A stretch of DNA of 64,000 nt from Octopus sinensis (GCF_006345805.1 NW_021832226.1:558001-622000); one strand, 5' to 3'; counted from the stretch's first letter, positions 2,494 through 62,967 are shown. Notes: generated from the sequence alone by a model not told the origin. A program made the numbers and translations.

Positions 2494-2829
2494 ATGGTTT
2501 GTTGTGGTGTGCTCTATTATTTAATAGGCAAAAACTAAGAAAGTAGGAATTTGTGGCAAGTACGGAGTTCGCTATGGAGCTTCGTTAAGAAAGTCAATCA
2601 AAAAAATAGAGGAGTCTCAGCATGCGAGATATCCTTGTCCGTTCTGTGGCACAACCGCCGTAAAACGCAAGGCAGTTGGAATCTGGGGCTGTAAAAAGTG
2701 CAAACGCGTGATTGCTGGTGGTGCCTGGAGTCTTAGGTGACATATAATTAATTACTTATATTTAGCACTTCCTCCGCTGTCACAGTGCGGAGTACTATTA
2801 GAAGACTGAGGGAGGTCCGAACTGATTAA
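2494..2829 (+). CDS. RPL37A: 60S ribosomal protein eL43 (L37a); introns of 31 nt (2497-2527) and 29 nt
   Basis: M|[22 protein letters not shown]...CPFCG...GIWGCKKC...GGAWSLS|[16 protein letters not shown]. Confidence 0.97.
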
Positions 2830-3359
2830 TGATTCATTTTCTTGTTATTTTTGGTCCTTATTCTTTCTAATTTATTTCATATTTTTTATCAAACAATTAA
2901 ACAGTTATGTGATAAATAATGATCTATCGTTTTATTTAATATATGTTAGAGAAGAATTATACTAGCTAGAAACGTTGTCTCTTTTTCGAAAACTAATGTT
3001 TTTACTTCTTATTGAACAAAGGAAGAAACTTCTTTGCTAACAAAATACAATTCTTCTCTTGACTATAAGCTGATTTTAGCTCTAACAACTTTGCCTAAAA
3101 ACTAAATATTTTTCAATGGTGCCACAAACCGAGTTCGTACTGTATTATTGCATAGAAGAAAACAAAAGTCTGGTGATGGAGCGGATAGCCTGTATTTTTT
3201 ATTTTATTTTTAGCGAAAAAATATCAACGATCTAAGACTTCAAAAACAAAAATTAAATTTTAATGATCCTACTTTCTCTAATAGGAAAAGATTATCTATT
3301 CTAAAATTTTCTGTTATTAACACTGAAATCTTAACATGAATGTAATGCATTTAACTTCT

Positions 3360-6800: not shown

Positions 6801-7479
6801 GTCTCGTTGTATCGAACGTCAAAAATTTCTGTCACTGTCTTTGTTTTTACAATAAAATTCTGTCTGTCTGTCCCATCTTCCTGTTTATTCTTTTATGATA
6901 CGGAGAATCCAAATTAACTGTTTGGGAAATTTTTTTTTTTTGGGAAATTAAAGTAGAATTTATCTTTCGTTGAATTTAAAACATTCACTTTATGTTTCGG
7001 GACTGTATTGATCTTCTGAGTATACTTTGGTATTTTCTACTACAGTATAGAATCCAAAATCTCTCAATATCTCGCGAACCAGCTAACGCATGCGATAAGT
7101 TAAAACAGACAATTCACCGTAGATGTGAGAAACGTTCGATTATATAAAAAACAACCTCTCTTATGTATTTTATCCACTCTTTTTTGTTATCCAAACTAAT
7201 GCATTTTCATAAACTCCTTGTGATTCTTTAAATTTTTAAATTTTTGGTGGACCAGGCTTCTGGGAGCGTGGCGATTCTGATAAAGACATAATTCCCTTTT
7301 CTTTTTCTTAGATCAAGAATATTGTAATATAAGTAAAGTTTTCTTTCAATTTGATTTAAACTATGTAAATTTTTTTGATGTTAAATAATAAATTGTAATA
7401 AAAAGGTAGATGATTACTTAGTTCGGTAAAAAAATTTTTTGAACAGAGCGAAAACCTGAAGGCAGACCGAGAGGGAAAA

Positions 7480-8090
7480 ACAAGCTTAGCTATGGTATGA
7501 GCTTTATCTCGATTAGGCATGAGCATTATCTCGAGTCATATGCCTTGAGTTGAGAATGAGAGAAGAGGCTTTTTCATTCTAGACTGGAACCCAAGGGTTT
7601 TTTCATCTCCTGTAAAGTCTAAAAGGTCATCGATATATTGATATCCAACTCCGAGATCCATAACAGCTCTTTGGAAATGTTTTGGGTCTTTAATATTGAG
7701 TTTTGCGACCACGGCACGAAATTCTAAAAACAGAAGTAGAGCCGCTGTTTTTTAGAAAACATGAGTTTGAGGGTTTCAGAATTAATAAATTTTCCATCAT
7801 AAAGTATGTCGATTACTTGACCACTAATCTTGCCATCACCGCCTCCACGACTTGAAAGGAGACGAGTTAGGCTGAGTTTTTTCAGATGAATTTCAACAAT
7901 TCGTGAAATAACATCCTCCAAGTGCTCATCCGTCAGTCTACTTTCAAAATGCACCAAATCATTTTTGACTTATTTTGTCCCAATAATTTATTATAGCTTT
8001 TTCTTCAAGCATCTTCCACGTATTGCCAACAATTGCAATTCCTTGTTTAAGTGAAATGTTTTTTCAATTTAGAAGGAGTGAACTATCATC
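7480..8090 (-). pseudogene. ispA: Bacterial-type short-chain polyprenyl diphosphate synthase (IspA/CrtE/GGPPS) pseudogene
   Basis: Collinear motifs GDGKISGQVIDI..GK, (frameshift) KTAALL, LGVGYQYIDDLLDFTGDEKTLG, (frameshift) NEKASSLIL. No introns; stops upstream. Confidence 0.7.
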
Positions 8091-8167
8091 CTTAAAAGTC
8101 AATTTATAATTCATTAGATAATCTTTATTAACTGATTTGGAAATCAATGTAATTAAATGTGATGAAG

Positions 8168-8461
8168 TTAGTTAGAGGACTTCCCCGCTTCGTAGATGGA
8201 GAAACAGTTTTCTCGTACGATGGCAAGGGAAATCCTCTGAAGGAGCCAGCCCGTCTCGCGTGTGTCATTTCTCTTCAGAGAGATCAGACGTCCGAGCTTA
8301 TAGAGGAAAGTCAAAGACTTTTCCCCAATGACCCCTGAAGTCTCGACAGCAACAGGGGCGAATAGATATCGCTCCGAGAGTTCTCTATATTTCGCAATCT
8401 TAAGCTTTTCTGTTCTAAGGGACACCGAACCGGCTGCGACGGCTGACAAGGGAAGATTCAT
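8168..8461 (-). mobile_element. 5'-truncated CRE-like retroelement, REL 3' end
   Basis: KYRELSERYLFAPVAVETSGVIG...WLLQRISLAIVREN. Confidence 0.8.
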
Positions 8462-8479
8462 TAGATTATTATAATAATA

Positions 8480-9130
8480 AAATAAAGAAAACTGGGAAAC
8501 TAAAGTCTCATTCAGTACAGTCTAGTTTATCGACTCGAAATGTCGAGATAAGAGTAGATACACCAATATTGACTGATACGCAAGTTCAGTTCAATAAGCC
8601 AGATATCTTTATCTATGACAGATTGAAGAACGAGATCACCATAATTGAGGTGGGGATTACATCGCAGGAGAGACTCAAACAAACCGAAGTTGAGAAACTG
8701 CATAAGTACGATTTGCTAAAGATGCTTTACGGGGCACCAGTCCGAATTATTCCGATTGTGCTGACGTGGGACGGGGTGGTTTCAACGTGTTACAAAGCCT
8801 ATATGGAGAAGTTATCCGTTGAAGGCCCGACAAGAACGTACATTCAGGGACTTGTCATGAAGAAGACATTGGAGGCAATTGTGGTAGAACATAGGCATGG
8901 AATCCATACGTCTCAAGAGGAACTCATTACGGCAACCAGTCAGTTGGCTGAAGTGGCAAATCAATCTTGCGAGGACCCTTCGGATGAAGCAAACGGGAAA
9001 ATCTTGTGTTCGGAGAATGAAAGTGCTGATGGTGCGTTGGTGGAAAGCTCTCCCAAGAGGAGATAAATTCCAGGAGACGAGGATTGTTGAGCTAACGTGA
9101 TTATGAACACATTTTCCATTGAAACTTAGA
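8480..9130 (+). mobile_element. 5'-truncated R4/Dong-like retroelement, REL endonuclease and 3' end
   Basis: NKPDIFIYD..EITIIEVGITSQERL..EKLHKYDLL (PD-(D/E)xK REL), IIPIVLTWDG. Confidence 0.8.
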
Positions 9131-9429
9131 ATAACATTTGTTTAATAAAGTTTTTTTTTATAATAATAAGATTTAGAGGATTTTATAATTCTAGTGGTTG
9201 AATTCTCAACGTTGTATTTTTCGGTAAAAAAACAAAATAACTAAATAATTTACCCAACCTTTACTCATTTTGTACTTTTTAGCAGTTTCACGTTGCGATA
9301 AGAAATTTTCGGCCAAATCTTTAATAATTTTAGATTTTATATCTTTAATGAAAGAGTCTATACAAGAAATAAACTAATATGCTAATAAAAATAATTTGAC
9401 AAAAATGCCTTAAAATTAAAAAAAATATA

Positions 9430-9920
9430 AGGGTGCCATAACAACTCCTCACAAAATGAGGGTGCTCCAAAAACGTGGTTTTTCTTGGCTGGGTTTTAGG
9501 ACCAGCTCATAGGAAATACTATAAGCGAGTGAACATCTTCCATTAGAATTAGGGTCGATATCCTGTTTTCCGAATTTAAGATTTTTTCTGTTTCAGCCAT
9601 GAAGCGGAAAGGTGGAAAGACAATTATTTGTGCATCGGTGTTTTAGCCTATTGAGCGAGTCCATAGGAGTCTCCAACATGATCTGCATGGGGTAGGATGC
9701 GAGCGTTTTTGAGATTTTAAGAAAATTAATTCTGTCGATGAGAGGTTTTAAACGTTCACAGCGCTCTTTTGTGTAATGACAAAGGGGATTATCAACATGA
9801 ATATTTTTTAAGTTTATCGTAGAGAGCAGTCATAGTGTATCCAGGTAGCTTTGTAAGACTAATGTAGTATTGAGTTTATCTACATACCGGACTCGTTTTT
9901 TTCTTTTGACGTTGCCTTCA
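9430..9920 (-). pseudogene. Unassigned intronless coding remnant inside the bacterial-like block
   Basis: Frame of about 170 codons with few stops (QQAERVMIEGNVK...RLKPLIDRINFL...QDIDPNSNGRCSLAYSIS), co-oriented with its neighbours. Confidence 0.3.
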
Positions 9921-9924
9921 ATCA

Positions 9925-10208
9925 TAACGCGTTCGGCTTGTTGAAGAGAGTATGCTGTTGATTGAGAAAAGGACGAGATTCACTTTTTTGGATAAATTTC
10001 ATAATTTCTGCAACGTCATTCATGACTCCTGTAGATCTCATAAAAGTCTGGTTGAAGGCTTTTTTGGATAAAGTCCCAAATTAAAATCGACAAGAGGTAT
10101 TTTTGAGATGATTTCCCTTAAAAGACCATTTGGACCAACTAGCTAATCTTGACCGACAACGGTCGCAAATTCAGCAAGTCTCAGTTCTTCTGCTAGTGGA
10201 ATCGACAT
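9925..10208 (-). pseudogene. rarA: Bacterial replication-associated recombination protein RarA/MgsA (AAA+) pseudogene, N-terminal part
   Basis: MSIPLAEELRLAEFATVVGQD*LVGPNGLLREIISKIP / LSILIW / Walker A deleted / KAFNQTFMRSTGVMNDVAEIMKFIQ; cf. RarA PLAERLRP..VVGQ.HL.GP. Confidence 0.7.
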
Positions 10209-10214
10209 GCAGTG

Positions 10215-10720
10215 AATTTTAGCATTACGTAATCTTTTTGTTTGCAACATGTTCGTCTTACGGAATTGATAGATAATTAGATGAATGGCCATCATTGCAA
10301 CAAGTCCGATAATTAAAAAGCCAACGTAAATGACTAAATTTCCTGTATCTAATTGTGCTGGAGGGATGAATCCAATGGCTATGGTAAAGAGAAAGGTAAG
10401 TAGACCGACGTTTTGCGACAACTCATATCCCTTTATTTGGGGGAGGGATCCAATAAATGTGTGGCACGTGAGGGTGAGAGTAGCAGAGGCGAATAGCTGA
10501 AATGGACATTAAAATGTACATGACTAGATACATTTGAGCAGAAAAGATGCAAAAGCAGTACTTACGTTTGGCATGAAGTTAATAACGAAAGATGCGATCG
10601 TGACTTTTACTTCACCTGCATAGGCAGTAGAAAATTCTAAACCAGCAAAGGCTAAGAAAAGGCCAGCTAAAAAGATCAGACTGTTCCTGCTCTGGCAAAA
10701 ATGGGGATGATAGTCAACAC
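10215..10720 (-). pseudogene. Bacterial APC-family amino-acid permease (GadC-like) pseudogene
   Basis: LIFLAGLFLAFAGLEFSTAYAGEVK / large deletion / VTIASFVINFMPNVSTAF / AQMYLVMYILMSISAIRLCYSHP..WIP / IAIGFIPPAQLDTGNL.IYVGFLIIG..IIYQFRK; at least 2 frameshifts and 1 stop. Confidence 0.72.
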
Positions 10721-10870
10721 CTAAAAAACTGAGATCATAAATATCTCAGTCCCAACACAAGACTTTGGCTTTGTAATAGAAAATATTTTGGAAATCTTGG
10801 CAGGGAAAAAACCAACTATCTCAAGCTAAGAGTTTCGAAATGTCCCATTTTCCTAAAAGCCTCTCTTTAC

Positions 10871-11480
10871 TTGACCCTCACACGGCCTTTTCCTCCTCAA
10901 AGAGCTTGCCTAACATCTGCCCTACACCTTTCCCTCCCGGCTTTCCTGTTCTCCGACTCATCCTGCCGAAAACTATCCCTGGAGATTCTACATAAATCTC
11001 CCGAATCTTCTTCGGACAAGCTTTTTGAAGATGAATGTATAGTGTGGAAAGATTCAGGATTAAAATTCCCACTCCAAACATCACTCCAACGGAGATGGGA
11101 CAATTTACATTGCAAATCCACCTCAGAAAACCTTGCATTGAGGCTCGACCAGCATCGCCTCGACTGTTTACGCTCTGCAACTGTGCCACAGAGCAGGTCA
11201 TGGCTAAATGCGATGCCAATTTGCTATCCTCGGAACACTATTAGAGGATGACTGCATGCGCATCAGTACTGCTCTGAGACTCAGACTTGATATCTGTGAA
11301 AAACATTCTTGCAGATGAGGGAAAATGGTTGACGTCAAAAGTGTTCACTTACTCTCTTGCAAACAAAGTGCTGGCCAGGCTCCTCGACACTCCGCTCTTA
11401 ACGATTTTATCTTACGAGCTCTTGAGTCAGCGGGCTTCTCCTCAGTGATAGAGCCAGTCGGCCTAGATCGTGGAGATGAG
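10871..11480 (+). mobile_element. CRE-like retroelement C-terminal remnant
   Basis: LSLPAFLFS, QRRWD, SRSWLNAMP, HLLSCKQSAGQAPRHSALND, IEPVGLDRGD. Confidence 0.75.
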
Positions 11481-11589
11481 GCTGTAGAGAAAGAAGAATG
11501 TGTGGCAAAGGGGTGTGATGAAAAGAAAAATATTGACGAGTTCGCATTTGCCGCCGTTTAGAGATAGTTAGATCTTGTAGAAACCAGAA

Positions 11590-13779: not shown

Positions 13780-14245
13780 CTGCAAGATGTCTCTACTGAG
13801 ACCGAATGTTATTACGTAGGTTGTCCGTCAAGATAGAGTATTTCGAGATTTTAAGTTCTTCAGCATTTTTAGCGGCTGATCCTGGACTGATTGCCGAGTA
13901 GACTAAATTTGTCTTCGAGGAAATTTTTGTATACGTAGAGTCCCGCGAAAGGCATTTCCTATTAATACACGGAAAAACGGTTACTCCATGTCTTCAAAGG
14001 TTTGTTTGATGCGAAACCGAATATTTCGGACGAACAAAAGATATTTATAAGCTCAGACTTGCTGATGTTTACTTCCAGCCCGATTTCACAAAGGTTGGAT
14101 CGATCTCAGTATCAGCGGGTCCCTCGATGGTTGCATCATCGAGATACCACAGGTTGAAAGTAGAATCAGCTTGGCATACGGCAGAATCAATACCAAGGGT
14201 GAACAGCAGTGGATCGAGAGGGTCACCCTAGATCGAAGTAAAAAA
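13780..14245 (-). mobile_element. CRE-like retroelement, RT fused by deletion to REL remnant
   Basis: GDPLDPLLFTLGID...NLWYLDDATIEGP; SAISPGSAAKNAEELKISKY. Confidence 0.7.
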
Positions 14246-17769: not shown

Positions 17770-18230
17770 TATTATTATATTATTTCTGCAATAGTAGACG
17801 TTCCAGAAAGTTGCGAACCCATCGAGTTTAATTGGTGTGTGAGAACTCCAATGGTGTTCATATGGTGGATACCCCAATACGCACCTCGATTGTTATTCAA
17901 CACAACAAACACAATATTTTGGTCCATGATAAGGTCACCGTAGAGATCGCTATCGTGGAAGTAAGCATCAAGCGCCTAGATCATTTGTAAACAGTGAAAG
18001 TGGAGAAAAGGGGGAAGTATGACTTCTTTGGATACGAGCTAGTTATATGCAGTCTACTGTTCTTAAGAGGGCTCTGGAGAGTATCTCGTTTGATACTCGC
18101 CGATCCAGTTCTTTCTTGAGATTTAGTCAGCGAGAGGCGCTGGACTTTACTTTCTCTAAAATCAACTAAGCCAGAGAAGAGGAGGAAGAAAGCGAGCAGG
18201 TGCATGGAGTGCCATCCTCTGTTCACTTTG
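17770..18230 (+). mobile_element. R4-like REL 3' fragment
   Basis: NILVHDKVTVEIAIVEVSIK..TVKVEKRGKYD. Confidence 0.65.
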
Positions 18231-30659: not shown

Positions 30660-31000
30660 TCACCCTCTTAGGGCCTACGTTCAGTGCACAGATGGGGAGA
30701 TTTATTTCAACGCGCAGTCTAGACTCAGAGGCTACCTCCTCAACAGGCTACATGCTCTCTAAAGTCTTTCGCAACACCAGTGTCTGGATATCACCCTGTC
30801 CTCTACTCTGAGCGCCTCCAAATGGTTTTTGAAGAATTTTTACACAATTCCGTCCCAGGTCATAACAAATGGACGATTTTCACTTTCCCCCCGGTGGATT
30901 GCAACCAGTTCATTTCTGGAACTTCTTCAGGTTGTATGTGTGAAACTTCTCCACTCGAATCTACTTAAGACAATTTTTTGAAGTGATCACCACTTCGATA
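30660..31000 (-). mobile_element. R4-like REL 3' fragment (near-copy at 31955-32200)
   Basis: Shares ..cgttcagtgcac.gatggg.. and tccgtcccaggtcat with 31955-32200. Confidence 0.6.
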
Positions 31001-31954
31001 AGTGTAATTGTTTTGCTCAATTCGTCGTTTGTTATTCTGGATAGCATTATCCGTCGGAAACTGAGATTTCCACAAATTAGTTGGTGTTAAAAATTTGATT
31101 CAATGGGTTTTTAATTTGTTCGACTTTTTTATCGCATATTAACGACATAAAATAGAGGCAGTCACTTGACAACCTCGTTATGGCGTCTGAGATAGTGGCC
31201 GTTAAGCACTCAATCACTTCTAACATTGTGATCAACAGTTATTTTGGATGAGCTACGGTGGCTCCATTTATTCTCCAATATTGAAAAATAAGCTTTGGTC
31301 TAGCAGAGAGTACAGGGTTGCTTCATGCCCGGAAAAATTGTTTCCGTGGATTAGCCAAGATTCATTAACATCAAATTCAAAATTCTTTAGGAATTGGAAC
31401 AAAATAAAGTGCAAGGGTTTTTTTCGACTTTTTCTATACATATTCACGTTGGATTTTTACCAGATTCGCTATTGTCAATTCATTTACATTTCCAGTATTT
31501 TATTTTCAAGATAAAAATTCTGCGATAGTAGCAATATGTGTTTTCTTTGAATTAAATTGGATAGAAGGTGATTAATTCCGGTTTACAACCAATCTTCAGA
31601 CTTGCGATTTTTTCCACGATTTTGATCTCATCTCGGAGTAAAAATGCAATCCTCTAGAACTCTCTTTTTTAATTTGTTGAAGCCATAAGAGCACAAAGTG
31701 TCACACTGTTTGTCAGTGATTTTTTTCTTTATCATCATTTTGCTAATAGTTTAGACTTGCTCAAGCTATCTTTTAATTTTAGCAAGTTTTCCTTTCATTG
31801 ATTATTTCCTTTACTCTTAAGCCTTGTTTTGTTGTTAAGCCTTTAATGTGCGCACTGTCCTGCATAGATGATATCAAAAATAAATTATACTGAGATAATT
31901 AATAGTTATTCAGTCTCCGTTTTCGTTATTTGTAGTGTTTTGTTGCATCAACCT

Positions 31955-32950
31955 TATTCTCTTAGGCCCCACGTTCAGTGCACGGATGGGCAGATCTATG
32001 TCAACGCGCAGCCTAGATTCAGGGACTACCTCTTCAACAGGCATCGATAAAGCGCCTCCAGATTGTTTTTGAAGAATTTTGACACTATTCCGTCCCAGGT
32101 CATGACGACATGGATGATTCAGATCGCTCCCAGTTCATTCGCCAGCAAGTCGTATTTGTGGAATTTTTCCACTTCGACCTGCTTGAGACAATTTTGCGAA
32201 GGATAATATCGAAAATATAGTTGATATTTAATTTTAGCAGGAAGGCCAATATATTTTTTGATTGACGCGTTAATCCCATTTAAGATTTCTGTTTCAGCAA
32301 TTTTCTTGGGATTTTTCTGGCTTGGACAAGCTGAAGAGTCTAATTCATTTTACAATGTTTTCGTTGACCATTGAAAAATTCTTATCCTGCAAATATGAGA
32401 ATAACCCTTCTGATTGCGGAGAGTAATTCCTATAGTTCAGTCACGTTGATAATGCCGGGACGTCAATGTACGGGTTGTCCGGGCTGCTAAAAAGAGTCGT
32501 GTGAAGCACTTTCAAGTTGATCTTTTTTTATTAGCAATTTCCTTTGATGTTTGATCAACTCCTTCACATTAACTTGGGTAGCATCCAGACCATACTTAAA
32601 CGAGACGTAGCTTTTTATGGTCCCAAGTTGTGTACCACGCGCTTTTTAAACAGCAAGGATGGAAGCCTTCCTTTGGGATAAATTTGAACCACTCCACAAA
32701 GTTTCGTGCATCTTGGTAAAAATTCTCTCACATAAGCGGAAGATGTTATTTAGTCCACGTCCTAACTGCCTTTGAGACAAGTACAATCTCTTCTAGTTGG
32801 TTGCTAACACGTTGACGTGATTCTGCCGGAGTAATTTTCGGACGATAAGGTTCATTTCATCGTACTCACTCGGGTCGAGTTCAATCAGGCCAACGGAATA
32901 GTTTAGCAGAGAGATTGCATACTCGTTCAAAGCATGGAATACTGTCTGTT
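31955..32950 (-). mobile_element. R4-like retroelement remnant (post-RT to REL)
   Basis: VEVEKFHKYDLLANELG on the minus strand; similar to 56200-56800. Confidence 0.65.
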
Positions 32951-35198
32951 GAAAAAAAATTTCACTTGAAAGTGTATGTTTATTTAAATTTGTGTAACTT
33001 TTTTAAAAATTTTTAAGGAAGACCAAATTTAAAAACCTTTTATCTAAACAATTAAATTTTTATTTTCGTCACTGTCGGCAAAATTCAAAAGTAACAACAT
33101 ATTCCAAAAAATCTTTGTTTAAAGAACGTGACCGCAAGTATTTTAATACATAATTCGTTTTCCTTTTTTCTTATAGACTTCTAGAACTCTTTAGTTGAAG
33201 CTCAAAACTTATTTCTTTATTAGTTCACGAATGTGATTATTCAAATTTTTCATAATTTCGTGCTTTAACGTTTCCCTATCCAGTTTTCCCATTCCATGTA
33301 ATCGACTTTATATAAGCTCACAAATGCTCGATTGGATAGAGATCTTGACTTTGTATGGGTCAATTGATTGTTTAATCCCCTTTCTTTCATAAATTTGGTT
33401 GTGACCCTGTATGTCTTGAATCGTTCATAAATTAAAAGTCAATTAAAATCATTTCTCCTGCTGACTGATTTAAATTTAGTGTTAAGATTTGTAAATAATG
33501 TGCAGCCGTTATAATCCCATTAATAAAAATAAGCCTGCCTACTCTCTTAGACGAAATACAGTCCCAAGCTAAAAAACTTTCTTCCTCAAATTTTACCGTG
33601 AGTATAATGTTTGCTTAATTATATCTTTAACTGTGAAAATATCGAACATTATTTATTTTATTTGATTAAAATAACTCGAATTTTGTTTCATCGGAAAAAA
33701 TAATTTTGCTTAGATCTTCAGACAAGATCCCCAAATAATTTTCTCTTTACTGGTCGCAATAGCGGTTTTTTACACGGTTTTCGATTTTATAGTCCAACAG
33801 AATGCAAGCGTTGTTTATTGTTGATCGAGAAAGTCGTACAATGTGCTCAGATTCAATACAATTTGTAATTTCTTGTAAAGTGGAAAAATGATTTCTATCA
33901 TATTATTTCAATATTGCGTTATTAATCGTCTGAGTAAGCTTTTTTAGACAACCAGAACCCACTGCACGTGAAAAAAGGCGACTTGCAGTTGCCTTTGAGA
34001 CAAGCACAATCTTTTCTAGTTGGTTACTAACACGTTGACGTGATTCTGCCGGAGTACTTTTCGGACGTAAGGTTCATTTCATCGTACTCACTTGGGTCGA
34101 GTTCAATCAGGCCAACGGAATAGTTTAGCAGAGAGATTGCATACTCGTTCAAAGCATGGAATACTGTCTGTTGAAAAAAAATTTCACTTGAAAGTGTATG
34201 TTTATTTAAATTTGTGTAACTTTTTTAAAAATTTTTAAGGAAGACCAAATTTAAAATCCTTTTATCTAAACAATTAAATTTTTATTTTTGTCACTGTCGG
34301 CAAAATTCAAAAGTAACAACATATTCCAAAAAATCTTTGTTTAAAAAACGTGACCGCAAGTATTTTAATACATAATTCGTTGTCCTTTTTCCTTATAGAC
34401 TTCTAGAACTCTTTAGTTGAAGCTCAAAACTTATTTCTTTATTAGTTCACGAATGTGATTATTCAAATTTTTCATAATTTCGTGCTTTAACGTTTCCCTA
34501 TCCAGTCTTCCCATTCCACGTAATCGACTTTATATAAGCTCACAAATGCTCGATTGGATAGAGATCTTGACTTTGTATGGGTCAATTGATTGTTTAATCC
34601 CCTTTCTTTCATGAATTTGGTTGTGACCCTGTATGTCTTGAATCGTTCATAAATTAAAAGTCAATTAAAATCATTTCTCCTGCTGACTGATTTAAATTTA
34701 GTGTTAAGATTTGTAAATAATGTGCAGCCGTTATAATCCCATTAATAAAAATAAGCCTGCCTACTCTCTTAGACGAAATACAGTCCCAAGCTAAAAAACT
34801 TTCTTCCTCAAATTTTACCGTGAGTATAATGTTTGCTTAATTATATCTTTAACTGTGAAAATATCGAACATTATTTCTTTTATTTGATGAAAATAACTCG
34901 AATTTTGTTTCATCGGAAAAAATAATTTTGCTTAGATCTTCAGACAAGATCCCCAAATAATTTTCTCTTTACTGGTCGCAATAGCGGTTTTTTACACGGT
35001 TTTCGATTTTATAGTCCAGCAGAATGCAAGCGTTGTTTATTGTTGATCGAGAAAGTCGTAGAATGTGCTCAGATTCAATACAATTTGTAATTTCTTGTAA
35101 AGTGGAAAAATGATTTTTATCATATTATTTCAATATTGCGTTATTAATCGTCTGAGCAAGTTTTTTAGACAACCAGAACCCACTGCACGTGAAAAAAG
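32768..35198. repeat. Tandem duplication, period about 1.22 kb (32768-33977 and 33991-35198), containing an R4 fragment and a Tc1-like transposase remnant
   Basis: Near-identical units with scattered substitutions; minus strand SKIIFSDETKFELF (Tc1 DDE first Asp). Confidence 0.9.
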
Positions 35199-40089: not shown

Positions 40090-41240
40090 ACTGGAATTTG
40101 TAATCGACCGAGAATTTGACAAGCATGTATCCTGGATGTGGTCCGTCTCAGACAGGATTTCGGGGTTTCAAAACAAATGGGAAACCAGACCCAAAAACGG
40201 ACTGGAGAGATTCCAGCTTCCTCCCACTGCTTCCGATTCTCCGCCTTCTCTCAGGATCTGGTTCTACTGATGTCTCGTGGTGGGTACTTCTTCCATTCAG
40301 TCGCTCATTGATTGTTCTAACATCCACTAAAATATTTGTTCCGTGATTTGCCCCCGTAGCTGAAAGTTTGTGTTTCGGAAGCATGCTCTCTAATGTCTTT
40401 TTAATCACGATCGTCTGGACATAAACACGAATCGAATTTTTGACTTTTACGGAGTTTTAATAGTGCTTGTAAAATTCGGATATTATTCTATTCCATGTGA
40501 GAACTAGTGGTACGACGTTCACTTTTTGATTGTGGATTAACTTTAAATCACTTGCAAAAAGATCGTATTTGTGTAATTTTTTAACTTTCACATGCTTTAA
40601 AGATTGTTGAGAAGTAATCCCAACTTTGACGAGCGTAAGTAATGATATTCTGAACCTTGTTGTAGACAAAAATGTCCGATTTATTATTAGCTTTAGTATC
40701 CGTCTTGATCGTCATGTCCATGCGTTTTTCGACCATCTCATTAGAGACAGTCTACTAAACAAAGTGGGTCTTCAACTTCCTATATCTCACATACACCTTA
40801 CCACCTAATTGTGGCGACGCAGGTAATCGCTGTTCAACATTCTGCCACATTTTGTAGCAAAATAATCCACAGTTTTTTTGACGGCATTTCAATGGTTGTA
40901 ACTACTACCTCCGCTGTCAAAGTTGCCGTCCTGAATCATACACAGCATTCCCTCTACCTTGGAGAGTTGTTCCCATGTGATAACAACAAAGACAATTCCT
41001 TCAAATCCACATCTAAATCATTATTGCAATTAAACCAAATAGAGTAAAGGGGGTTTCTTTGTATCTGCTTAATTAAGTATTTTCGTTGTACATCCTTCAA
41101 AACGTTCTGTTTAAGGCTTTCCGGAGTTGCCAATTGATACTTTCTGCATAGGAATTTTTGATAGTCGCCATGCTTTCTTTCATGTGTATTCAATGGCGCA
41201 TCAAAACCTTGCGCATATTCTTTTAATATTCTCAAATTCG
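40090..41240 (-). mobile_element. R4-like retroelement remnant (CCHC, REL, 3' ORF tail)
   Basis: HGNNSPR, TKCGRML..DYLRRHN, VGITSQQ..KKLHKYDL. Confidence 0.75.
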
Positions 41241-42768
41241 TCCGATGTAATAGCTACAAAACGACAATGCATGCTCGGCAGCCTTGAAAAAATTTGGAGA
41301 ATTCAGTTTTATTTTGTCTCCAGAGAAGTTGAAAATGATAATTTTTCGACAGACTTTCAGATAATAAAATCCAAGTCAGACAACAAGTTGGGTTCCTGGA
41401 AACACGGAGATGAACGGAGTAAGTAGATGAGATGCAGGATAGAAAGATAGTTTTTAATGAGAAATAGCTCACGTGTGCATCGAGGTCGAAGATTCGTTCC
41501 AGGGTCAGAACTAACTTACCTCTCTTATCCCCGATTGCAGTGGATATTCCTCCACCGGAGATTGGCAAACCAAGGATAATCAGATCTTTCAGATTTGTAA
41601 ATCTGTGACCGACAACCTTTTTAGAAAGAGATGCGAAGGGCTGATCGAATAGAGAGTAGTCAGGGGAAAGGCGAGTGAACTCCGACTTGGAACCATTGAG
41701 GGATAGACCTCAGACGCAGAGATTAGCAAATTTTTCCAAAATAAAAGATTCAATTTTTTATTATATTATTTATTTTGGATGACCCCGGTTTGCTTGTACT
41801 TCTTATATATTATTATTTGACATATTTATTTTGATTTTTATATGGTTCATAAAAAAATCAAAGATTAATCAGTAAAGTTTTATGGTTAAATAATAATTAC
41901 ATCAACTAGAAGTTAACAAAGCAATTCATCCGAAGTGGACCCCGCCGACATTATCGACGTTGCGTTGCCTCTCACGATAGCAACAGAGATCAACTGGAGA
42001 AGCCACTGGGTCTCACGTATGTCGTGGCTTTTTAGTGTGGCTAAGCATCCAAGCTTCTTTAGGAAGCGAAGCGATTTCCCACTTATTCCTCCAGTTTTCT
42101 CGACCACAATCGGAAAGATTAATTATGTAACAAAAATTAAAATTGCTAAAAATATGGAATATGGTCAGTTTTCAAAACTAGATCTCGCAAAAAATATAAA
42201 ACGAGCAAAGGTATCGTTTTATCTAATATATTGGAAAAAACGGAAGCAAGTAAGTAAGCAATGAAAATCTATGATCCAATAAAATATTATGCTGCTCTAA
42301 AATCCAAGGTGTTAAAAAAATATGATTAAATTTTTATTATATTATTTATTTTGGATGACTGCGGTCTGTGACACATATTTATTTGATTTAATTACAAAAT
42401 GTTATTGTACTTCTTATATACATTATTGGACATTATTGGACATAAAAGATTTATTAATTGGTTTTGTTCCGAGTCAGTTTTATAAATAAACTTTAAAAAT
42501 TTTTTACACGTGTATTTATATTATAAGATAAAAAGTAAAAAGGACACGGTTAAAAGGTATTTGCGGTGGCATGCATGATGGAATGTGCATTACTGCGGAT
42601 GACGCCTATTCCGATTTGTTTGAACAACCATGACACTTCCCGGGGCTCCCCTCTCACATAGCGACTTTTCCTTAGACTTCTTTGATCAAAGAAGTCGTTA
42701 AAGGCCTGTTGCCCCAGATTTCTCCACAGCGATAGGGATGAAACAATACCGTTGTCCAGGATTTTCAT
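41240..42768 (-). mobile_element. Cluster of CRE-like remnants (41240-41720, 41913-42107, 42550-42768) with shared 3' UTR
   Basis: LPISGGGI; WLLQLISVAIVRGNA; WLFKQIGIGVIRSNA; shared tttattatattatttattttggatgac. Confidence 0.7.
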
Positions 42769-43352: not shown

Positions 43353-44875
43353 CTATGTAAAATTTACTTCAGAGTTTTGAATATCTTTTGGAGAATTATT
43401 TTTAATTCCTAAAGATCTAAAATATATTTAATTTTTATTACATGTTAAATTTCTTAATTTTTTTACGCAGAAAAATATTTTGATTTTTAAGTTTTTTAAC
43501 TTTAACTGATAATGTTTTTTTTTCTTCTGATATTTTAAGGAGTTCATTTTTTATTAGGTTGTACTTGTCATTTAATATTAATTAAATTTACTTCAAATGT
43601 ATGCTTCCTTGTCATTTCTGATTTTATTTGGCTAATTTGATTATCAAAAAGTTTCGAAATGGTTTTAATTTGTTCTGAACTTAAAACAAATTTTTCTTTT
43701 TCATTTTCTTTACTGAGTTTCTGAAAGATTGTAGTCGAGTCTATGACACTGTTCTCTTTATTTACTAAATTAAATTATTCCCATGAAAAAACCGAGCTCG
43801 TCCACTTCCAATAAGAGTTTCTCGGATGTCAATTCGGATTCGGATCTATAATTAGATTCAATTAACATTTTGATTAAAATAATGTAAATATTTTACTTAA
43901 TTGATTTTGATTCTTCTTCAATTTTCTCGTAATTATCATTAACGGGTTCACTAAATGTTGTCAATTAGTTTGTGAAATAAAGAAACATTAATATGTTAGT
44001 GATATTACTTATAAATAATACTCTTATTTTAAGCCATTTTGGGTTATATAAATCAAAGTTTTTACTTACCTAACAAATGTGATATGAGGCCAAGCCCTAA
44101 GATCAGTCTCTCGAATTGGCACTTCTTTCCTCATAAAGACATCTTTTGAAATTTCATCATCCTAAAAAATATAGAAAATATAATCTACAGAATTATGTAT
44201 AAACTTATTCTTCATATCTTCAATAATTTGTACACAAAAGGGATCTGAGTTGTTAGACGCAAATATAAAATGACGCCATTTGGATCGTTCAAGTCCCCAA
44301 TGCTTTACGGATCTTATTTTAACGTCATGCGTGTGCATGACAAACTCCTCGGGGTTTAACATCCCGAAACATTCCTGGCATATTATGCACTTGTCGGACT
44401 CAGTGTTGTACAATTTTTGTTCAAAAAATCCATTTGATCTTCCAAAACAGTAGTGATGAATTAATGTAGCCTGTTTCGACAAAGGAAACTCATATTTTGG
44501 TAGATTTTCTGGAAGAAGCAATTGGCACAGACGCTCAGCCTCGGAAAGATTTATTAAACCGCAGCCAGGAGCTTCTATAGGAATTGTTTTTGAATTTTTG
44601 AGTGCCATTAGTTGTAGTACATTGCATCTTCCACATACGACATTCATTTTTTGACAGGTCTCGTTGATTTTTTTAAGGGAAATGTCTTTAAGAACAGTAT
44701 TGAGAAATACTGAGAGAACTAGTCTCTTTTCCCCATTTACTTGAAAACACGGAATCGACTCGTTTCGTACAATCGTTAAAATTTTAGTGCACGAGCCGTC
44801 ATTTAGATGTGGAGGTACTTGTAAATAAGAATCCATTCCCGCTTGCTTCCTATGGTTTGAGATAAATGGAATCAT
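43353..44875 (-). CDS. SKI: Ski/SnoN-family transcriptional co-repressor (DHD and SAND-like domains); exons below 44160 and the true start are tentative
   Basis: ESIPCFQVNGEKRLVLS..CGLINLSEAERLCQLL; HHYCFG..CIICQECFGMLNPEEFVMHTH..HWGLERSKWR. Confidence 0.88.
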
Positions 44876-45699: not shown

Positions 45700-45960
45700 A
45701 GTATAATAGTTTGGAGACGTGGATACAATTTTTGAGGAGGAAAAAAACCGTATGAAAGTCAAGTAGAAAGAGGCGTTCAGAAAAACAGAACATTCCACCA
45801 CTTTTAGCTCGGAGGTGGTTTTGCAATTCTGACTCCCCGAAAGGAAACCTGAGAAAATAAACACATTGAGGTGTGCTCGGGAAGTTTTATGGTTGCTCCA
45901 ACAAATCGGAATAGCTATCGTTCGCGGGAATGCATACTCCATTAAGCGTCTAACCGCATG
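45700..45960 (+). mobile_element. CRE-like REL 3' fragment
   Basis: REVLWLLQQIGIAIVRGNAYSI on the plus strand; the listed minus ORF is a shadow. Confidence 0.65.
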
Positions 45961-51535: not shown

Positions 51536-53298
51536 CAGTCCGACCTTGAATTGGAACACTAAGTGTTCCAAAAACTGAGGTTTTTCCAAAAACTGAGGTT
51601 TTGTCAAAAAATTAATATCAATATACATTTAATAATTTAATTAATGCAAAAAAGTCTTAAATATTATTATTTATTGAAAATAGTCATCGATCCTTTTTCC
51701 ATAACTATAATTTTTCTTCAAACTACTGAACAAATTTTGTCTGAAACAGTAAAAATCATTTAACAAAATTGGAGCTATGTCTAGAACTGATTCTTCCAAT
51801 TCATTCACTTTTGTTACTACTTCTTTGACCGTAGTCTGTTTATTTTGCATACCACTGTAAAAAATTTCTTCATTATCGTGGCTTTCCGTATTTTCCAACA
51901 CTTCGTCTACAACTTGTTCTATAACATCATCCGTCAGATTATCAGAAACAACAAATATTTCATTGCCGAAAGCATTATCCCAACAATTTTTAATTATTTC
52001 GGAGGATACATTTTGCCACGATTTCGATACTATCATCAATGATTGGCGTAAATTAATTTTTTTAAGTAAGTCGCAGTAAAAATCTTCTTCATCTATACAA
52101 CAAATAAATTCAATTAACGCCTTCGAATAATTATCTTTAAAAGCTTTGATTATCCCATTATCCAATGGTTGAAGAATTAGAGTTGTATTTTTGGGTAAAA
52201 ACAGCAATTCGATATTTGAGAGCGATTTATTTTCATGACACGAAGCGTTATCAAGAATTATTAAAATTTTTCTCTTTTCCATTTTCATTCGTTCATTCAC
52301 TAAGAATAACCATTGAATAAAAATATCTCTTGTCATCCAGGCATTTTTGGAAGATGAGTACATAGCACCATAATCCTCAGGGTTAAAATTTCTGAAACAT
52401 CTGGGATTTTTAAATTTCCCGATTATTAAAGGATCAAATTTTTGGCCTGAATAACTGCAGCAAAAGAGCAAAGAAATTTTTTCCTTATTTATTTTAGAAC
52501 CTGACGCTTTTTTATTTTTTTGTACGAATGATTTTTTTGGGGTCTTTTTTATAAAAAGACAAGTTTCATCAATGTTAAAGATATTATTTTTTCCAAATTG
52601 ATGAATTTTTTCATGGAAAATTTTTAAAAATGATTGAATTCCATCACGATTACATGAGTTTTTTTCGCCGCTAAGGATTTTGAATTTCAGTTCATGTCTT
52701 TTTTTAAAATTCATTAACCAACCATTCGATACTTTAAAGCTTGTAATGTTCAATTTACCCGCAATTTTCAAACCTTAAAACAATGTGAGAAAAAGTAAAA
52801 TTACCAATTTTTTTGATAAGAGGACCGAAACTGGAATATTTTGGAGCCGTAATTGTTGAAAAACGTCGATAACTTTACTATCCAATGTTTTAAAAATATC
52901 GTCAGTTTTTGTTTCAGTCCGAAAATTTGGAATAATGTTCCCACAGGTTATTTGCGGCGTAATCGTTTTTTATTCAAGCAATTGTGCCAATGCTCGTTTC
53001 ATATTTTTGAGAAAGTACTCTGTGTGAATGACTTTTTAGTTGTCGAGCAATTTCAAACTTTTTCTCGTAACTGAGACCCATAATGATTTAGCGTGGAGTT
53101 TTTTTAATCCAAATTAATTAATTTTTTTAATGACTAGAAATAAATAATAATAATAAATTTTGTTCCAAATCGATGTTTTCATTTAAAAGGAATTATTTAT
53201 TCTAGGCAGAGATCCTACAAAGTGTTCCAAAAACTGAGGTTGTTCCAAAAACTGAGGTGTTCCAGCCCCGAGGTCTGTTCCAAATCGAGGTCGGACTG
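51536..53298 (-). mobile_element. Full-length Tigger/pogo transposon (TIRs, TA TSD); CENP-B HTH plus DDE transposase with a 31-nt intron; HTH region disabled
   Basis: TA|CAGTCCGACC..GGTCGGACTG|TA; ORF 51671-52771 has SNGWLMNFKKRH, IFNIDET, LDNASCH, LQPLDNGII; N-terminal exon has stops and frameshifts. Confidence 0.92.
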
Positions 53299-57824: not shown

Positions 57825-60800
57825 AATAGAATAGAATAGTATTTATTGACCGAAAAGAAAAACAAGGAAGAAATCATTAACGGGGAGATAAAAACAAGGC
57901 ACCGAAGTGTCTCTTTCCATGCGTATCCCCAATTGTAGTCATAGTTGACAACAATTCTCCAAGACCATCCGGATCGTGGGCACAGAGGATTCTTGTGAGT
58001 CTTTTAACCTTCCGTCAAGTTGTACTCCGTAAGCCAGTTTCATAGTGAAACGTCTTGTCTTTTCCAAACTGTTCGATCAGATAGTCACTCTCCTCCGTAC
58101 CGTACCAGCCCTCGTAGCCATATGTGAGGACTGGCTGCACACACGTTTTGTATACGTAGATGTACGTTTCCGGATTCAGATGGAACCTGGTTAAGCTTTT
58201 GAGGATCCTCACACTCCTCTTTCTCTGATTTGCTATATGATCTGCGTACGAGCCACGACAGTTGATGGTTGTTGCTCCCAGGTAATAAAGATTTTTGCTT
58301 TTCGAGAGATCCATCACATAACTACTCATCGCATATGCACACGACTCCACATAGCGACTCCCTCTCCGCAACCATGAAATAATGCTCTTCTCCGGTGCTA
58401 GGGTCAAACCCTTCTCTATAGTCCACATCTTTAGCGTTGCAATGTATGATTTAAGTCGTCTCCAAGACTGCGATATCCTTTTCGAGGTATCCATGACCAG
58501 GATATCGTCAGCATAGATGACGAGCTTGCCAGTACGTGTCGACGGCAGAGGAATGTCCGACAAGAAGAGGTTGAACAGAAGTGGACTCAAGATAGATCCC
58601 TGCGGGACTCCCCTTCTAAGTTCCACACACCCCGATAGGCGGTTTCCACAGCGGACAAATGATTGTCTTCCTGACAAGAAGCTTTCCAGCCATCGATAGG
58701 TCTTTATCCCGGCTCCGGTGTCATGGACTCTGGAGAGTAGGCCCAGGTGCCACACGCTATCGAAGGCTTTGGCCAGGTCTAGACACACCACAGTTAGCCA
58801 TGCTTTATTTCTGTCAGCACGGGATAATTGGTGCTCTAACTCCCTGAGGCAGTCCCCTGTGGATCTTCCTTCACAAAATCCCCATTGTTCGGGTAAAAGC
58901 AAATTTTGTGATTCTATATGACCAGAGAGTCTGTTAAAGACAATCTTTTCCATTGTCTTAGAGAAAACACAAATGAGGCTAATTGGCCGGTAGTTCTGTG
59001 CCAGCAGTGTCGATTTACCAGATTTTGGAATCATTCGAACAATCGTATGCTTCCACGCCGATGGAAGGTGTCCGAACGTCCAGCTGGCGTGAAACAACAT
59101 AGTCAGTGCTCGTATCAAGATTTCAGGGGCCTTCTTTAACAACTTCTGAGGGATGTAGTCGAAGCCAGGCGCCTTGTTCTTCAACCCAGCAATTGCCCTT
59201 TCAACCTCTTCCTGTGTTATCGCCCCACATAATGGTCCCTCCGATAATTGCGAAGAGCCAAGCTTCTTCACAATTCGGTCATAAGTCCCTCGTGGAACGG
59301 TAGATTCGACCTCTTGAACCTGACTGAGTTGGTTCCTGAGTACTTCCGGGATACGATCAGAGGAGATATATTTCCCGTCTGGTTCTTTTAGTGAAATTTC
59401 AAATCCTTTGGCATCATTTCTGGTAAGGCGTTGATATGCTTTCCAGAAATTAGGGTTTCGCTTATCCAGTTTTCTGCATTCAGACCTCCATTTACTTTCG
59501 ACCTCAGTCTTGGCCATTTTTGCAATAGTAGATTTTATCTTGTCGATCTCCAATTTCAGGCGGCATTTGATTGACTCAACCCGGCATCTTTTCCTGCGAT
59601 TTTCCAGAGTACCTTTCGTTCTGATCAGAGTGACAAGTTTCGAATTCATCCGCTTTTGCGTTCCTTTGGGTTTCCATACATTTTTTAATGCATGAACATC
59701 CAGGAATTTTATGATTGACGATCTAAGGTGATCATCGAGATTGTCAATATCATCTCTGCCTCTCAGAGGATGGAACACAACATTTCGAAGAGAATCCCGC
59801 ATATATGATTCGAATAAACTCCAGTTCATATTCACGAGGTTGTAACCAATGAACAGGTCCTCCGCAACATTCATAGTCATCTTTATCAACATCGTTTGCG
59901 GCACGTGGTCAGAGCCAATGTCCGCTTCCAACCTCGGTATGTAACATAAAGGACTAATTGATGCCGAGCATAGAAAGAGACCCAAGCGATCAGCCATCCT
60001 CTGTCTGCATAATGATTCAGTTCTTTCGATGTAAATACCGAAAAACCCAAGCTACTGGCCAAGTCTTCAAGGACAGTCCCATCCATATTCGTAGTTTCAC
60101 ATCCATAACTCACATTTTTGGCATTAAGATCTCCTGCTAGGATTGACAGGCAATTTTCCTCAAAGAACGTCCCAATAACGTTTGAATAGCGCCTTAGCGA
60201 CTTTGAGTAAATTCCCTCGACGGTTAGCCAGCCAGCAGTCGTGTGCAACTCGAGCACAATAAGTTCACAGAGTGACTCCTCCACAATTCTGATGTTTCTT
60301 ACCTTAAGGTTCGCCCTGTAGTAGACTGAGGTTCCTGTTCCCGCCACTGAGTTTATTTTCCATGGTATATTAATAGACTTATAGCCTTCGAATTCCACCC
60401 TCGTAGCTTCCTTCAGCTTAGACTCATTGATAATCAATATGTGAGATTTCGCTGTGGCCAGCAGGAGCCTCAGCTCCGATGCCCGTCTCGCAAGCGAGCG
60501 GGCATTTGTGATCGTTATTACGATCAATCCTTCCGCCTTCGGCGACTGACCTCCCGTGGGAGCGCCGCCACCTTGGTTAAAAGAGACGTATCCATTGTAT
60601 GCTTTCCAGCCATTTCGAAGGCTTGCTCCTCTATCAAGTCCGGAGATTCATTTGACTTTGGCTTCCTTCTGGTCGTTTTTGTTAAGGGGCCCGTTTTCAC
60701 ATTGCTCACTTTCTGTGGAACACAGATCGGGTCTGTCTGCATGCCAAACTCGACAGTCATCGGCACTCCATTGTTCCCTGCATCGGGGAACTCAGCGTCC

Positions 60801-61689: not shown

Positions 61690-62967
61690 TCTTTATATTA
61701 ATACAATAATTTTTTAGAGAACAGAGTTTTGCTACTACGTCACATAATAAAGTGTCCATATCACAATTCCGTAGTCTTTGAGAACGATTTATATCGTTGT
61801 AAGTAAAAAAGAGAATCTTGGTTTTCAAATTTAATTTCTGGACACAACTAAATTAAGCCGGAAAATTATAAGAAAGTCTTCGGAACAACGCATACTCACA
61901 TATAAAGTCTTTTTGGGTATAGTTTGGAAAACTTTCCTAGTTATAGCCGTCATTTTATTTTTTATATCTATAAAAGAATATGTATTTTTTAATGTAAAGC
62001 GTTGGTCAGGTTTTTTTGGAGATTCAAAGTAAAGCTTATGACCAATGGTAAGCATTTTAAAGCCATTTGTCAATTGTTGATATTTATTTCTCGGATGAAT
62101 AAAAATTCCTTGTTAAAAACAAGAATTTAATTTTCGATTATCAAGAAAGTTTGGAGGCAAAGAAATCTAACTTATCTTCAGATTTTTTTAATAGTCAGAA
62201 TTTTTCTAATAAACAGTCGTTAATTCTTTGATTGAGAGGACGAGCGAATAGACAGGCAGTTTCCGCGAAATGCGCTGAAAAAGCCAGCTAGACTCACGTC
62301 TATCGTGACTCTTCCTCAAGATCATCAAACCAATCTCCGAAAGGGACTCCAGGGCTTTTGGGCCGATTATCCCACTCGTCTCGAAAACTAGGGGGACGAA
62401 AAGGCAGGTGTTCTCCAATGAGGCGTACTTTGCGAGTTTTTTCGTTTCGGCATGTGCGGAGGCTGAGCCAGGGCGGGAGGCAGAGTCGATGAGAGATGAC
62501 GAGGAAAACGAGTCGACACAGGTGACGTCCCATCGAGAGTGAGTCCCCCCTTGAACGGGAATAGCGTAGACCCAGCGGGACGTTTTCCGTCACCACGGTC
62601 TAACCCAACCGGCTCCAGGACCGAAGGGAATCCATCTCCAGATTGAATAAAAAAGTATCAGAGCTGAGAAATTGATCGAAAGAAAGCATAATTTTATGAT
62701 ATGCAGATCAGTTATTTTTAAACTTGTACTAGAACCTCCCTAGATTGTCTAAAAGACGACCCTAAACTAGCACGCGTGAATTTGGGCTTTGGTTTTCGTT
62801 ACAATATACTCAACATGAGTTAAAAAAAGATTGGTCAAACATAACATTAAAGATCTTTGGGAATTTGACAACGGATAAATGTTCGAAGACGTCATGATGT
62901 TAAAACTACCAATTCGGTAAGACAATCAGTCTTATCAAATAGCTCCAAAATGGATTCGCACACAAAA
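61690..62967 (+). other. Probable unidentified spliced gene with a predicted transmembrane segment, interrupted by a CRE fragment
   Basis: Plus-strand exon-like frames (RVLLLRHIIKCPYHN..; VFLGIVWKTFLVIAVILFFISI) flanked by gtaag donors and ttag acceptors; model incomplete. Confidence 0.3.
62200..62640 (-). mobile_element. CRE-like REL domain fragment
   Basis: LEPVGLDRGDGKRPAGST..WDVTCVDSF..AETKKLAKY..FVPLVFETSGIIG..WLFQRIS. Confidence 0.85.

Follow-up and report, generated by a model that had tools for sequence, protein, structure and literature searches.

Dead fragments of five co-directional bacterial genes embedded in animal DNA

We analysed a 64,000-nt stretch of DNA filed under Octopus sinensis (GCF_006345805.1 NW_021832226.1:558001-622000; this whole stretch is called the window below) and in it a 3.3-kb block that carries the remains of bacterial genes on a single strand, with insertions of host jumping genes inside it. 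When every stop-free stretch was translated and searched separately, positions 7539-10745 of the minus strand were found to hold dead fragments of five bacterial genes, intronless and co-directional, in the 5'->3' order permease, rarA, ruvX, nadA, a pair of retroelement fragments and ispA. Each of the five remnants was independently supported statistically and every one was damaged by stops, frameshifts, truncations or deletions, with two tight bacterial-style gene junctions preserved (permease to rarA and ruvX to nadA). Of genes that spanned at least 5 kb, about 2.3 kb survive, with amino-acid identities of 40-59% to their closest relatives. These data support the reading that the block is of bacterial origin, is embedded in animal DNA and is long dead; there is no indication of a current function and the remnants are non-functional. 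Very probably, part of a bacterial chromosome became inserted in the germ line of an animal, was non-functional then or soon afterwards, decayed as neutral DNA and received insertions of host retroelements.

The original prediction, made from the sequence alone, had described three intronless, same-strand bacterial pseudogenes (a GadC-type permease, RarA and IspA/CrtE) and an unassigned open reading frame (ORF). Absence of introns, common strand and bacterial origin were all confirmed, but the genes number five, RuvX and NadA having been missed. The stops, frameshifts or deletions it had described were seen in all remnants, and its overall proposal of bacterial DNA that decayed within an animal genome is upheld by the presence of NadA and RuvX, by the bacterial junctions and by the embedded host retroelements.

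The five gene remnants

The first remnant belongs to a GadC-like permease of the APC family of about 470 amino acids (aa) and lies in three pieces, all on the minus strand. Piece 1 (10527..10745), placed by tblastn and by alignment to 85 permeases, joins residues ~175-221 directly to residues ~340-365, and displayed 54-59% identity over 27 aa to chlamydial loci by tblastx. Piece 2 (10426..10542; residues ~366-404) lies in a frame different from that of pieces 1 and 3. Piece 3 (10233..10430) comprises the C-terminal ~65 residues and matched the NCBIfam GadC model TIGR03813 at positions 405-464 of 479 (E=5.4e-10), in keeping with the predicted GadC-type permease. The closest relative found was a permease recovered by a motif-based scan of metagenome contigs (L101), with 70% identity to piece 2 over 33 aa, 55% to piece 3 over 60 aa, 56% over a further 27 aa and 48% over 171 alignment columns. 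Among 1.84 billion representative proteins the best phmmer match (E=3.5e-9; 51% identity) was to the extreme C-terminus of a 468-aa permease. A tblastn search with this 468-aa permease (P0001) mapped residues 340-466 to 10604-10233 and residues 189-221 to 10706-10605, indicating an internal deletion of ~118 codons at 10604/10605 and loss of the N-terminal ~170 codons; the alignment to 85 permeases also revealed two frame changes. The last transmembrane segments and the C-terminus of the GadC-like APC family were therefore recognizable in what is left, from which the substrate specificity of the permease cannot be inferred. A back-translated scan of GTDB genomes with a 121-aa piece of the window recovered no relative.

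Permease piece 3 has lost its own stop codon and reads in frame into the start of rarA (mgsA). The rarA ATG (10206-10208) lies ~24 nt past the last aligned permease residue, so that the permease end adjoins the RarA start as had been claimed. The remnant consists of the start codon and the N-terminal ~35 codons (10101..10208, minus strand), with an in-frame TAG at codon 22 (10143-10145) and a frame shift after approximately codon 35. A position-specific scoring matrix (PSSM) of 33 N-terminal columns from 11 diverse RarA proteins peaked at 35.5 bits at 10101-10199 on the minus strand, with the runner-up among 127,804 six-frame window positions scoring -2.4, and 10-15 of the 33 positions were identical between the remnant and individual RarA proteins. 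The N-terminal motif PLA..RP..L.E.VGQ.HL.G.G..LR..I was recovered by this matrix. The protein begins M-S-I-PLA, like Bacteroides RarA (M-x-PLA), and because it starts right after the permease C-terminus there is no space for a long N-terminal extension. Ungapped PSSM blocks for Walker A, Walker B and the sensors of RarA found no support in the region, where neither these blocks (sensor 1 included) nor the MgsA_C domain was recovered. Two short RarA pieces matched nothing in the PDB by phmmer, and E. coli RarA was too distant as a query to detect the remnant. Since a search seeded with E. coli RarA gave only Enterobacterales, the RarA and NadA reference sets were taken from mislabelled chromosomes or chromids in a plasmid collection.

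A possible continuation of rarA at 9946..10099 (minus strand) would require two more frameshifts. It comprises the segment before the P-loop ('LLSILIW', recognized by eye only) and the interval between Walker A and Walker B, and gave a weak collinear match to positions 58-97 of a RarA hidden Markov model (HMM; E=0.41 with the full model, 0.10 with an N-terminal model). It was the top match with the full model and the second with the N-terminal model, behind the P-loop of a host Arf-like protein (1908-2135). An extension by eye beyond codon ~110 ('ATSKE...INSILH') was rejected, as the PSSM blocks were silent there and the same DNA encodes RuvX in another frame. The 300 C-terminal codons of rarA cannot fit before ruvX, and rarA is therefore a gene stub and not a gene. 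Of the predicted RarA pseudogene, the N-terminal stub stands, whereas the distal part (9833-9952) proved to be the C-terminus of RuvX/YqgF.

The ruvX (yqgF) remnant comprises the C-terminal ~40 codons and the stop codon (9830-9832) and occupies 9830..9952 on the minus strand, as identified through Pfam, the PDB and a metagenomic RuvX described below. Positions 9833-9952 matched the Pfam profile PF03652 at 96-133 of 134 (E=1.7e-4) and B. subtilis YrrK (PDB 1vhx; E=1.6e-4). The C-terminal helix region ending in ...LQ.YLD is present and closes with a stop codon, as does the RuvX family. The N-terminal ~100 codons are gone: a full-length RuvX query aligned only over residues 104-137, and the RNase H-like fold with its catalytic Asp was not found.

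Closely 3' of the ruvX stop lies a remnant of nadA, coding for quinolinate synthase, which covers residues ~60-131 in three reading frames (9452..9716, minus strand) and, judged by eye, may begin near 9800, just past the ruvX stop. Positions 9499-9642 matched Pfam PF02445 (E=2e-4) and were the best of 3,358 window pieces with an HMM built from six NadA proteins (E=8.6e-5). The neighbouring pieces in other frames, 9651-9716 and 9452-9592, were collinear at HMM positions 60-72 and 101-131. A GV.FMAEtAKiL segment is followed by a PD..AgCsLA segment, the PDB matches were exclusively quinolinate synthases, and the top tblastn match of E. coli NadA fell on this remnant.

The last remnant is that of an ispA-type short-chain prenyl diphosphate synthase (7539..7969, minus strand; residues ~100-243) in two frames. 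The pieces 7727-7969 and 7539-7751 matched the Pfam family polyprenyl_synt (PF00348; E=4.1e-7), and the NCBIfam FPPsyn model at positions 129-174 and 174-230 in two adjacent frames. The second Asp-rich motif is retained (IDDLLD), and the segments YIDDLLD and GKISGQVID, corresponding to the DDxxD and GGQ..D region, align to Pfam, NCBIfam, PDB and metagenomic IspA sequences. E. coli IspA matched the remnant with E=2e-4. The first Asp-rich motif and the N-terminal 100 residues were not found, with E. coli and metagenomic IspA aligning only from residue ~123-132 onward. All PDB matches of the pieces were bacterial, although human FDPS and GGPS1 are represented there by many structures, and the predicted IspA/CrtE-type remnant is thereby borne out. 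Extensions by eye into 7962-8171 and 9209-9373 were dropped for want of a family match, and an xseB gene located before ispA, as in E. coli, was not supported by Pfam or tblastn searches.

Approximately 320 nt between nadA and the retroelement fragments (9131..9451, minus strand) form an unassigned spacer that had no match in Pfam or the PDB. Within it, a 55-aa stop-free stretch (9209-9373, minus strand) had a sole match to NCBIfam MarR_EPS (E=0.006), with the segment 'LSQRETAKKYKMSKGWVNYL' resembling the helix-turn-helix of MarR-type EPS regulators, and may be a sixth bacterial remnant. This part of the unassigned ORF of the original prediction keeps that status, whereas the adjoining 9452-9716 is the nadA remnant.

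Overall the block has a prokaryotic architecture, with co-directional, tightly spaced genes and no micro-intron in any of the five remnants, and its coding capacity has been lost through stops, frameshifts, truncations and the ~118-codon deletion. Its genes are bacterial rather than animal in kind (RuvX, NadA, the RarA N-terminus, IspA and the GadC-like permease), with four of the five families, NadA, RuvX, IspA and RarA, pointing to bacteria. No animal counterpart is known for NadA or for RuvX, a bacterial protein. When the whole 64-kb window was compared by tblastx with 1.2 Mb of prokaryotic loci, bacterial matches were confined to 7400-10900.

Host DNA in and around the block

Two host retroelements had been predicted inside the block, and 5'-truncated fragments of both were located at 8171-9130. 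Fragment A (8171..8521, minus strand) is the end of an ORF that in other copies lies 3' of the reverse transcriptase. It displayed 48-57% identity by tblastx to 41928-42122 and 62266-62484 and has a further copy at 13823-13966, downstream of a reverse-transcriptase motif at 14072-14227. Fragment B (8419..9130, plus strand) consists of a C-terminal ORF module and a 3' tail, with tblastx copies in the window at 17778-18023, 40367-40778, 30801-31026 and 32050-32199; its guanine-cytosine (GC) content is 0.44 compared to 0.35 in the flanks. In total, the embedded fragments have diverged protein-level copies (38-57% identity) at at least five other sites of the window. The right-hand side of the block is bounded by a host repeat and a retroelement fragment (10824..11561, plus strand), with 76% identity over 79 nt to 45731-45809 by blastn and tblastx matches to 1-84 and 682-837. 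The bacterial parts have a GC content of 0.347 and 0.355 compared to 0.357 for the whole window. Within this one assembly, the block has host retroelement fragments inside and beside it and a GC content equal to that of the host. Four ORFs of the window were looked up by exact match and had no record elsewhere.

The surrounding DNA encodes metazoan proteins, including a Ski/Sno DHD domain with a c-SKI SMAD4-binding domain, an Arf-like GTPase and RPL37a. The window is also rich in elements of the long interspersed nuclear element (LINE) type and has one pogo-type transposase. The host introns that could be delimited measure 24, 26, 28, 29 and 31 nt, in line with the micro-introns predicted for host genes. 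Among animals, introns under 30 bp are reported only from Dicyema japonicum and myxobolid myxozoans (PMC13644364), and the D. japonicum genome has 36.7% GC, 48.9% repeats and numerous LINEs (PMC6736024). Introns of 24-31 nt, ~36% GC and many LINEs fit a dicyemid best among published animal genomes, so that the host, judged by these sequence traits, is probably a dicyemid. No report of bacterial symbionts or gene transfer in dicyemids was found in the literature searched.

Several other features of the host DNA were observed. The RPL37a gene (2494-2830, plus strand) has two introns, one of 31 nt immediately behind the ATG (2497-2527) and one of 29 nt at 2737-2765; its spliced product of 91 aa had no relative above 78% identity among 5.8 billion proteins and no myxozoan among its top matches. 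A single-exon ORF at 44162-44875 (minus strand) carries the Ski/Sno/Dac DHD and c-SKI SMAD4-binding domains, which indicates a metazoan host that keeps a corepressor of the TGF-beta pathway. A tandem duplication with a period of 1222-1223 nt extends over 32767-35000 (plus strand), with copies 95-99% identical (32767-33145 compared to 33990-34367) and identical 33-aa peptides at 33517 and 34739. A LINE-type element at 58015-60527 (minus strand), in which a 213-aa endonuclease ORF overlaps a 660-aa reverse-transcriptase ORF, is apparently intact and could still be active. A stop-free ORF at 51671-52771 (minus strand) encodes a 366-aa pogo/Tc5-type transposase (DDE_1 and HTH_Tnp_Tc5 domains).

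Origin of the block and its donor

The remnants are consistent with a donor segment that would have carried at least an APC (GadC-like) permease, rarA, ruvX, nadA and ispA on one strand and would have become fixed in the germ line, either never functional there or soon no longer so. Without promoter context or selection, such an insert would decay as frameshifts and stops accumulate. Through deletions the stub of rarA would have been joined to the end of ruvX, nadA would have lost two thirds of its length and the permease its middle part, and intervening genes would probably have disappeared altogether. Two LINE-type elements would later have inserted between nadA and ispA and are now old fragments themselves. 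As far as a sequence can establish them, insertion, decay and invasion by elements are demonstrated by the block. The segment would have arrived in a single event, and its original size was possibly 26 kb or more.

The lead to a donor comes from contig Ga0309773_1000192, 149 kb of an uncultured bacterium, of which 80 kb (22.9-102 kb) was examined. The closest permease relative, L101 (61847-63289), ruvX (76031-76459) and an IspA-type synthase (87899-88705) all lie on its plus strand, separated by gaps of 12.7 kb (permease to ruvX) and 11.4 kb (ruvX to ispA), and the order permease, ruvX, ispA and the common strand are the same as on the minus strand of the window. The contig RuvX has 44% identity to the remnant over 34 aa (E=1.5e-5), and the contig IspA 44% over 50 aa and 34% over 71 aa (E=9.4e-9, compared to 2e-4 for E. 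coli IspA in the same search space). As a rough estimate, the chance of three genes sharing order and strand over 26 kb is ~1e-4 to 1e-5 for a genome of ~2 Mb and one contig examined. The contig also encodes a SET-domain protein, a RING-finger protein, two UCH-type ubiquitin hydrolases, an ankyrin-repeat protein, a Mip-like FKBP and a Legionella_OMP-family protein, a set which suggests that its bacterium lives inside eukaryotic cells. NCBIfam was uninformative on the orphan proteins of the contig except for the SET-domain and Mip-like matches. Further genes encode a 537-aa PFK, a 634-aa GcpE and a fused aroD-aroE, and one stretch has the order pyrG-ruvX-zwf-opcA-pgl. The pyrG-yqgF-zwf order, the long GcpE, the 537-aa PFK and the fused aroDE would point to Chlamydiota; a literature search on this gene order in chlamydiae gave no usable result. 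The same bacterium was present in at least three samples (JGI 3300028840; Ga0180438, as contig Ga0180438_10000149; Logan SRR6963591). A ParD/ParE pair is also found on contig Ga0309773_1000192.

Related permeases were collected from 80 GTDB loci in bins labelled Micrarchaeota, in Omnitrophota, Planctomycetota, Chlamydiota and Akkermansia, and in others, with 39-44% identity to the remnant over 171 columns. The synteny of permease, rarA and ispA had been proposed as a check, and these loci were searched by tblastx with the block and by blastp with E. coli RarA, IspA, XseB, NadA and YqgF. In a permease tree the family is scattered across phyla, and the branch of the window, at 1.9-3.1 substitutions per site, falls adjacent to the contig permease at a point where two long branches meet. 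As a separate observation, GadC-like permeases are abundant in bins labelled Candidatus Micrarchaeota, often with two copies per locus (L001-L008, L022, L049); such abundance was unexpected in archaeal genomes of this small size, and transfer or errors of binning may lie behind it.

Several points weigh against the germ-line insertion of one donor segment or against the donor suggested by the contig. The tree position is unreliable, as the tree was run twice and the branch was too long to place where two long branches meet. The permease is only 48% identical to its best relative. Neither rarA nor nadA occurs in the 80 kb of contig examined, so that gene order is only partly shared and the local order in the donor differed. 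None of the 80 GTDB permease loci has rarA, ruvX, nadA or ispA within 10 kb. The sequence does not tell one insertion from several fragments joined together, and the physical linkage of bacterial and host DNA rests on one assembly. On the contig, the proposed synteny is recovered for permease and ispA, with ruvX between them, but not for rarA, and the predicted intracellular donor of chlamydial or Legionellales type gains indirect support from the gene order and the eukaryote-like proteins of the contig, while the permease tree cannot place the remnant.

The explanation that survives best beside an intracellular donor concerns the same insertion but another source. The donor could have been a free-living or extracellular associate, met in the habitat or as food, with the likeness to the contig reflecting the shared ancestry of mobile transporter genes, and we consider this a realistic possibility that falls short of being probable. 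It agrees with the scatter of the permease family across phyla, which suggests frequent transfer, and with the lack of rarA and nadA in the contig region; nadA itself indicates de novo synthesis of NAD and hence a donor genome that would not have been strongly reduced. Against it stand the order and strand that three functionally different genes have in common with 26 kb of the contig, and the SET, RING, UCH, ankyrin-repeat, Mip-like and Legionella_OMP-family proteins encoded there; moreover, an intracellular bacterium would reach the germ line more easily. An intracellular, Chlamydiota-like donor is thus suggested, rather than established, by the gene content and order. The more specific proposal, that the block is the remnant of at least ~26 kb from a chlamydia-like bacterium that formerly had an intracellular life in germ-line cells of a dicyemid mesozoan, is put forward tentatively and we hold it to be rather doubtful. 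A donor that was a symbiont of the present host could at most be conjectured.

It is unlikely that the five remnants stem from several separate insertions or a rearranged mosaic instead of one contiguous donor segment. In favour of a mosaic, many known bacterial inserts of animals are rearranged in this way, and in the present block the stub of rarA runs into the end of ruvX and unassigned DNA follows nadA. Simple deletions explain the fusions, and against a mosaic stand the location of all five remnants on the same strand, two native-looking gene junctions and an order of permease, ruvX and ispA that agrees with the contig.

An assembly artefact, with host contigs mistakenly linked to DNA of a bacterium that contaminated the sample or lived alongside the host, is very improbable. 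Foreign DNA does occur in samples of parasites, and published dicyemid assemblies required decontamination (PMC6543705). A living contaminant would be expected to carry intact genes, whereas all fragments here have stops, frameshifts or large deletions; retroelement fragments of host type separate the bacterial pieces and also flank the block on either side, the GC content equals the host background, and the nearest relative found in 15 billion proteins and 241 million metagenome records reached only ~50-59% identity.

Least credible of all are decayed eukaryotic genes of the host, for instance WRNIP1, GGPS1/FDPS or an SLC7 transporter in the form of processed pseudogenes: eukaryotic homologues do exist for RarA, prenyl synthases and APC transporters, but NadA and RuvX, which by established knowledge lack animal counterparts, are present, the IspA pieces match only bacterial enzymes in the PDB, the M-S-I-PLA start of RarA abuts the permease where a eukaryotic N-terminal extension cannot fit, and the genes are packed head to tail, three of them collinear with a bacterial contig.

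Comparison with known inserts

That animal genomes can contain dead bacterial inserts is well established. Such inserts are useful as fossils, in that they are evidence that a bacterium once reached the germ line, and as the present block has no function today its interest is historical and not mechanistic. The collinearity of three of its genes with a contig rich in eukaryote-like proteins provides a concrete and testable lead to the donor lineage. If a chlamydia-like germ-line endosymbiont of a dicyemid were indeed the source, the block would give the phylum its first molecular evidence of a bacterial endosymbiont, evidence that could be dated via the retroelements inserted in it.

Contig Ga0309773_1000192 differs from the block in that its permease is not followed by rarA, nor its ruvX by nadA, and its identities are far too low for it to represent the donor species. 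The bdelloid rotifers resemble the present case in having bacterial genes among retroelements in the genome of a small invertebrate. Many of their foreign genes are intact, intron-bearing and expressed, in contrast to five dead fragments without a micro-intron here. The Wolbachia inserts of insects and filarial nematodes are alike in consisting of multi-gene pieces of a bacterial chromosome in an animal germ line, mostly non-functional, which pick up stops and indels and into which transposable elements of the host insert. Compared to these, the present block is far more eroded and older-looking, its donor was not Wolbachia-like as far as can be told, and it lies in a host lineage, probably dicyemid, for which the literature searched records no bacterial inserts.

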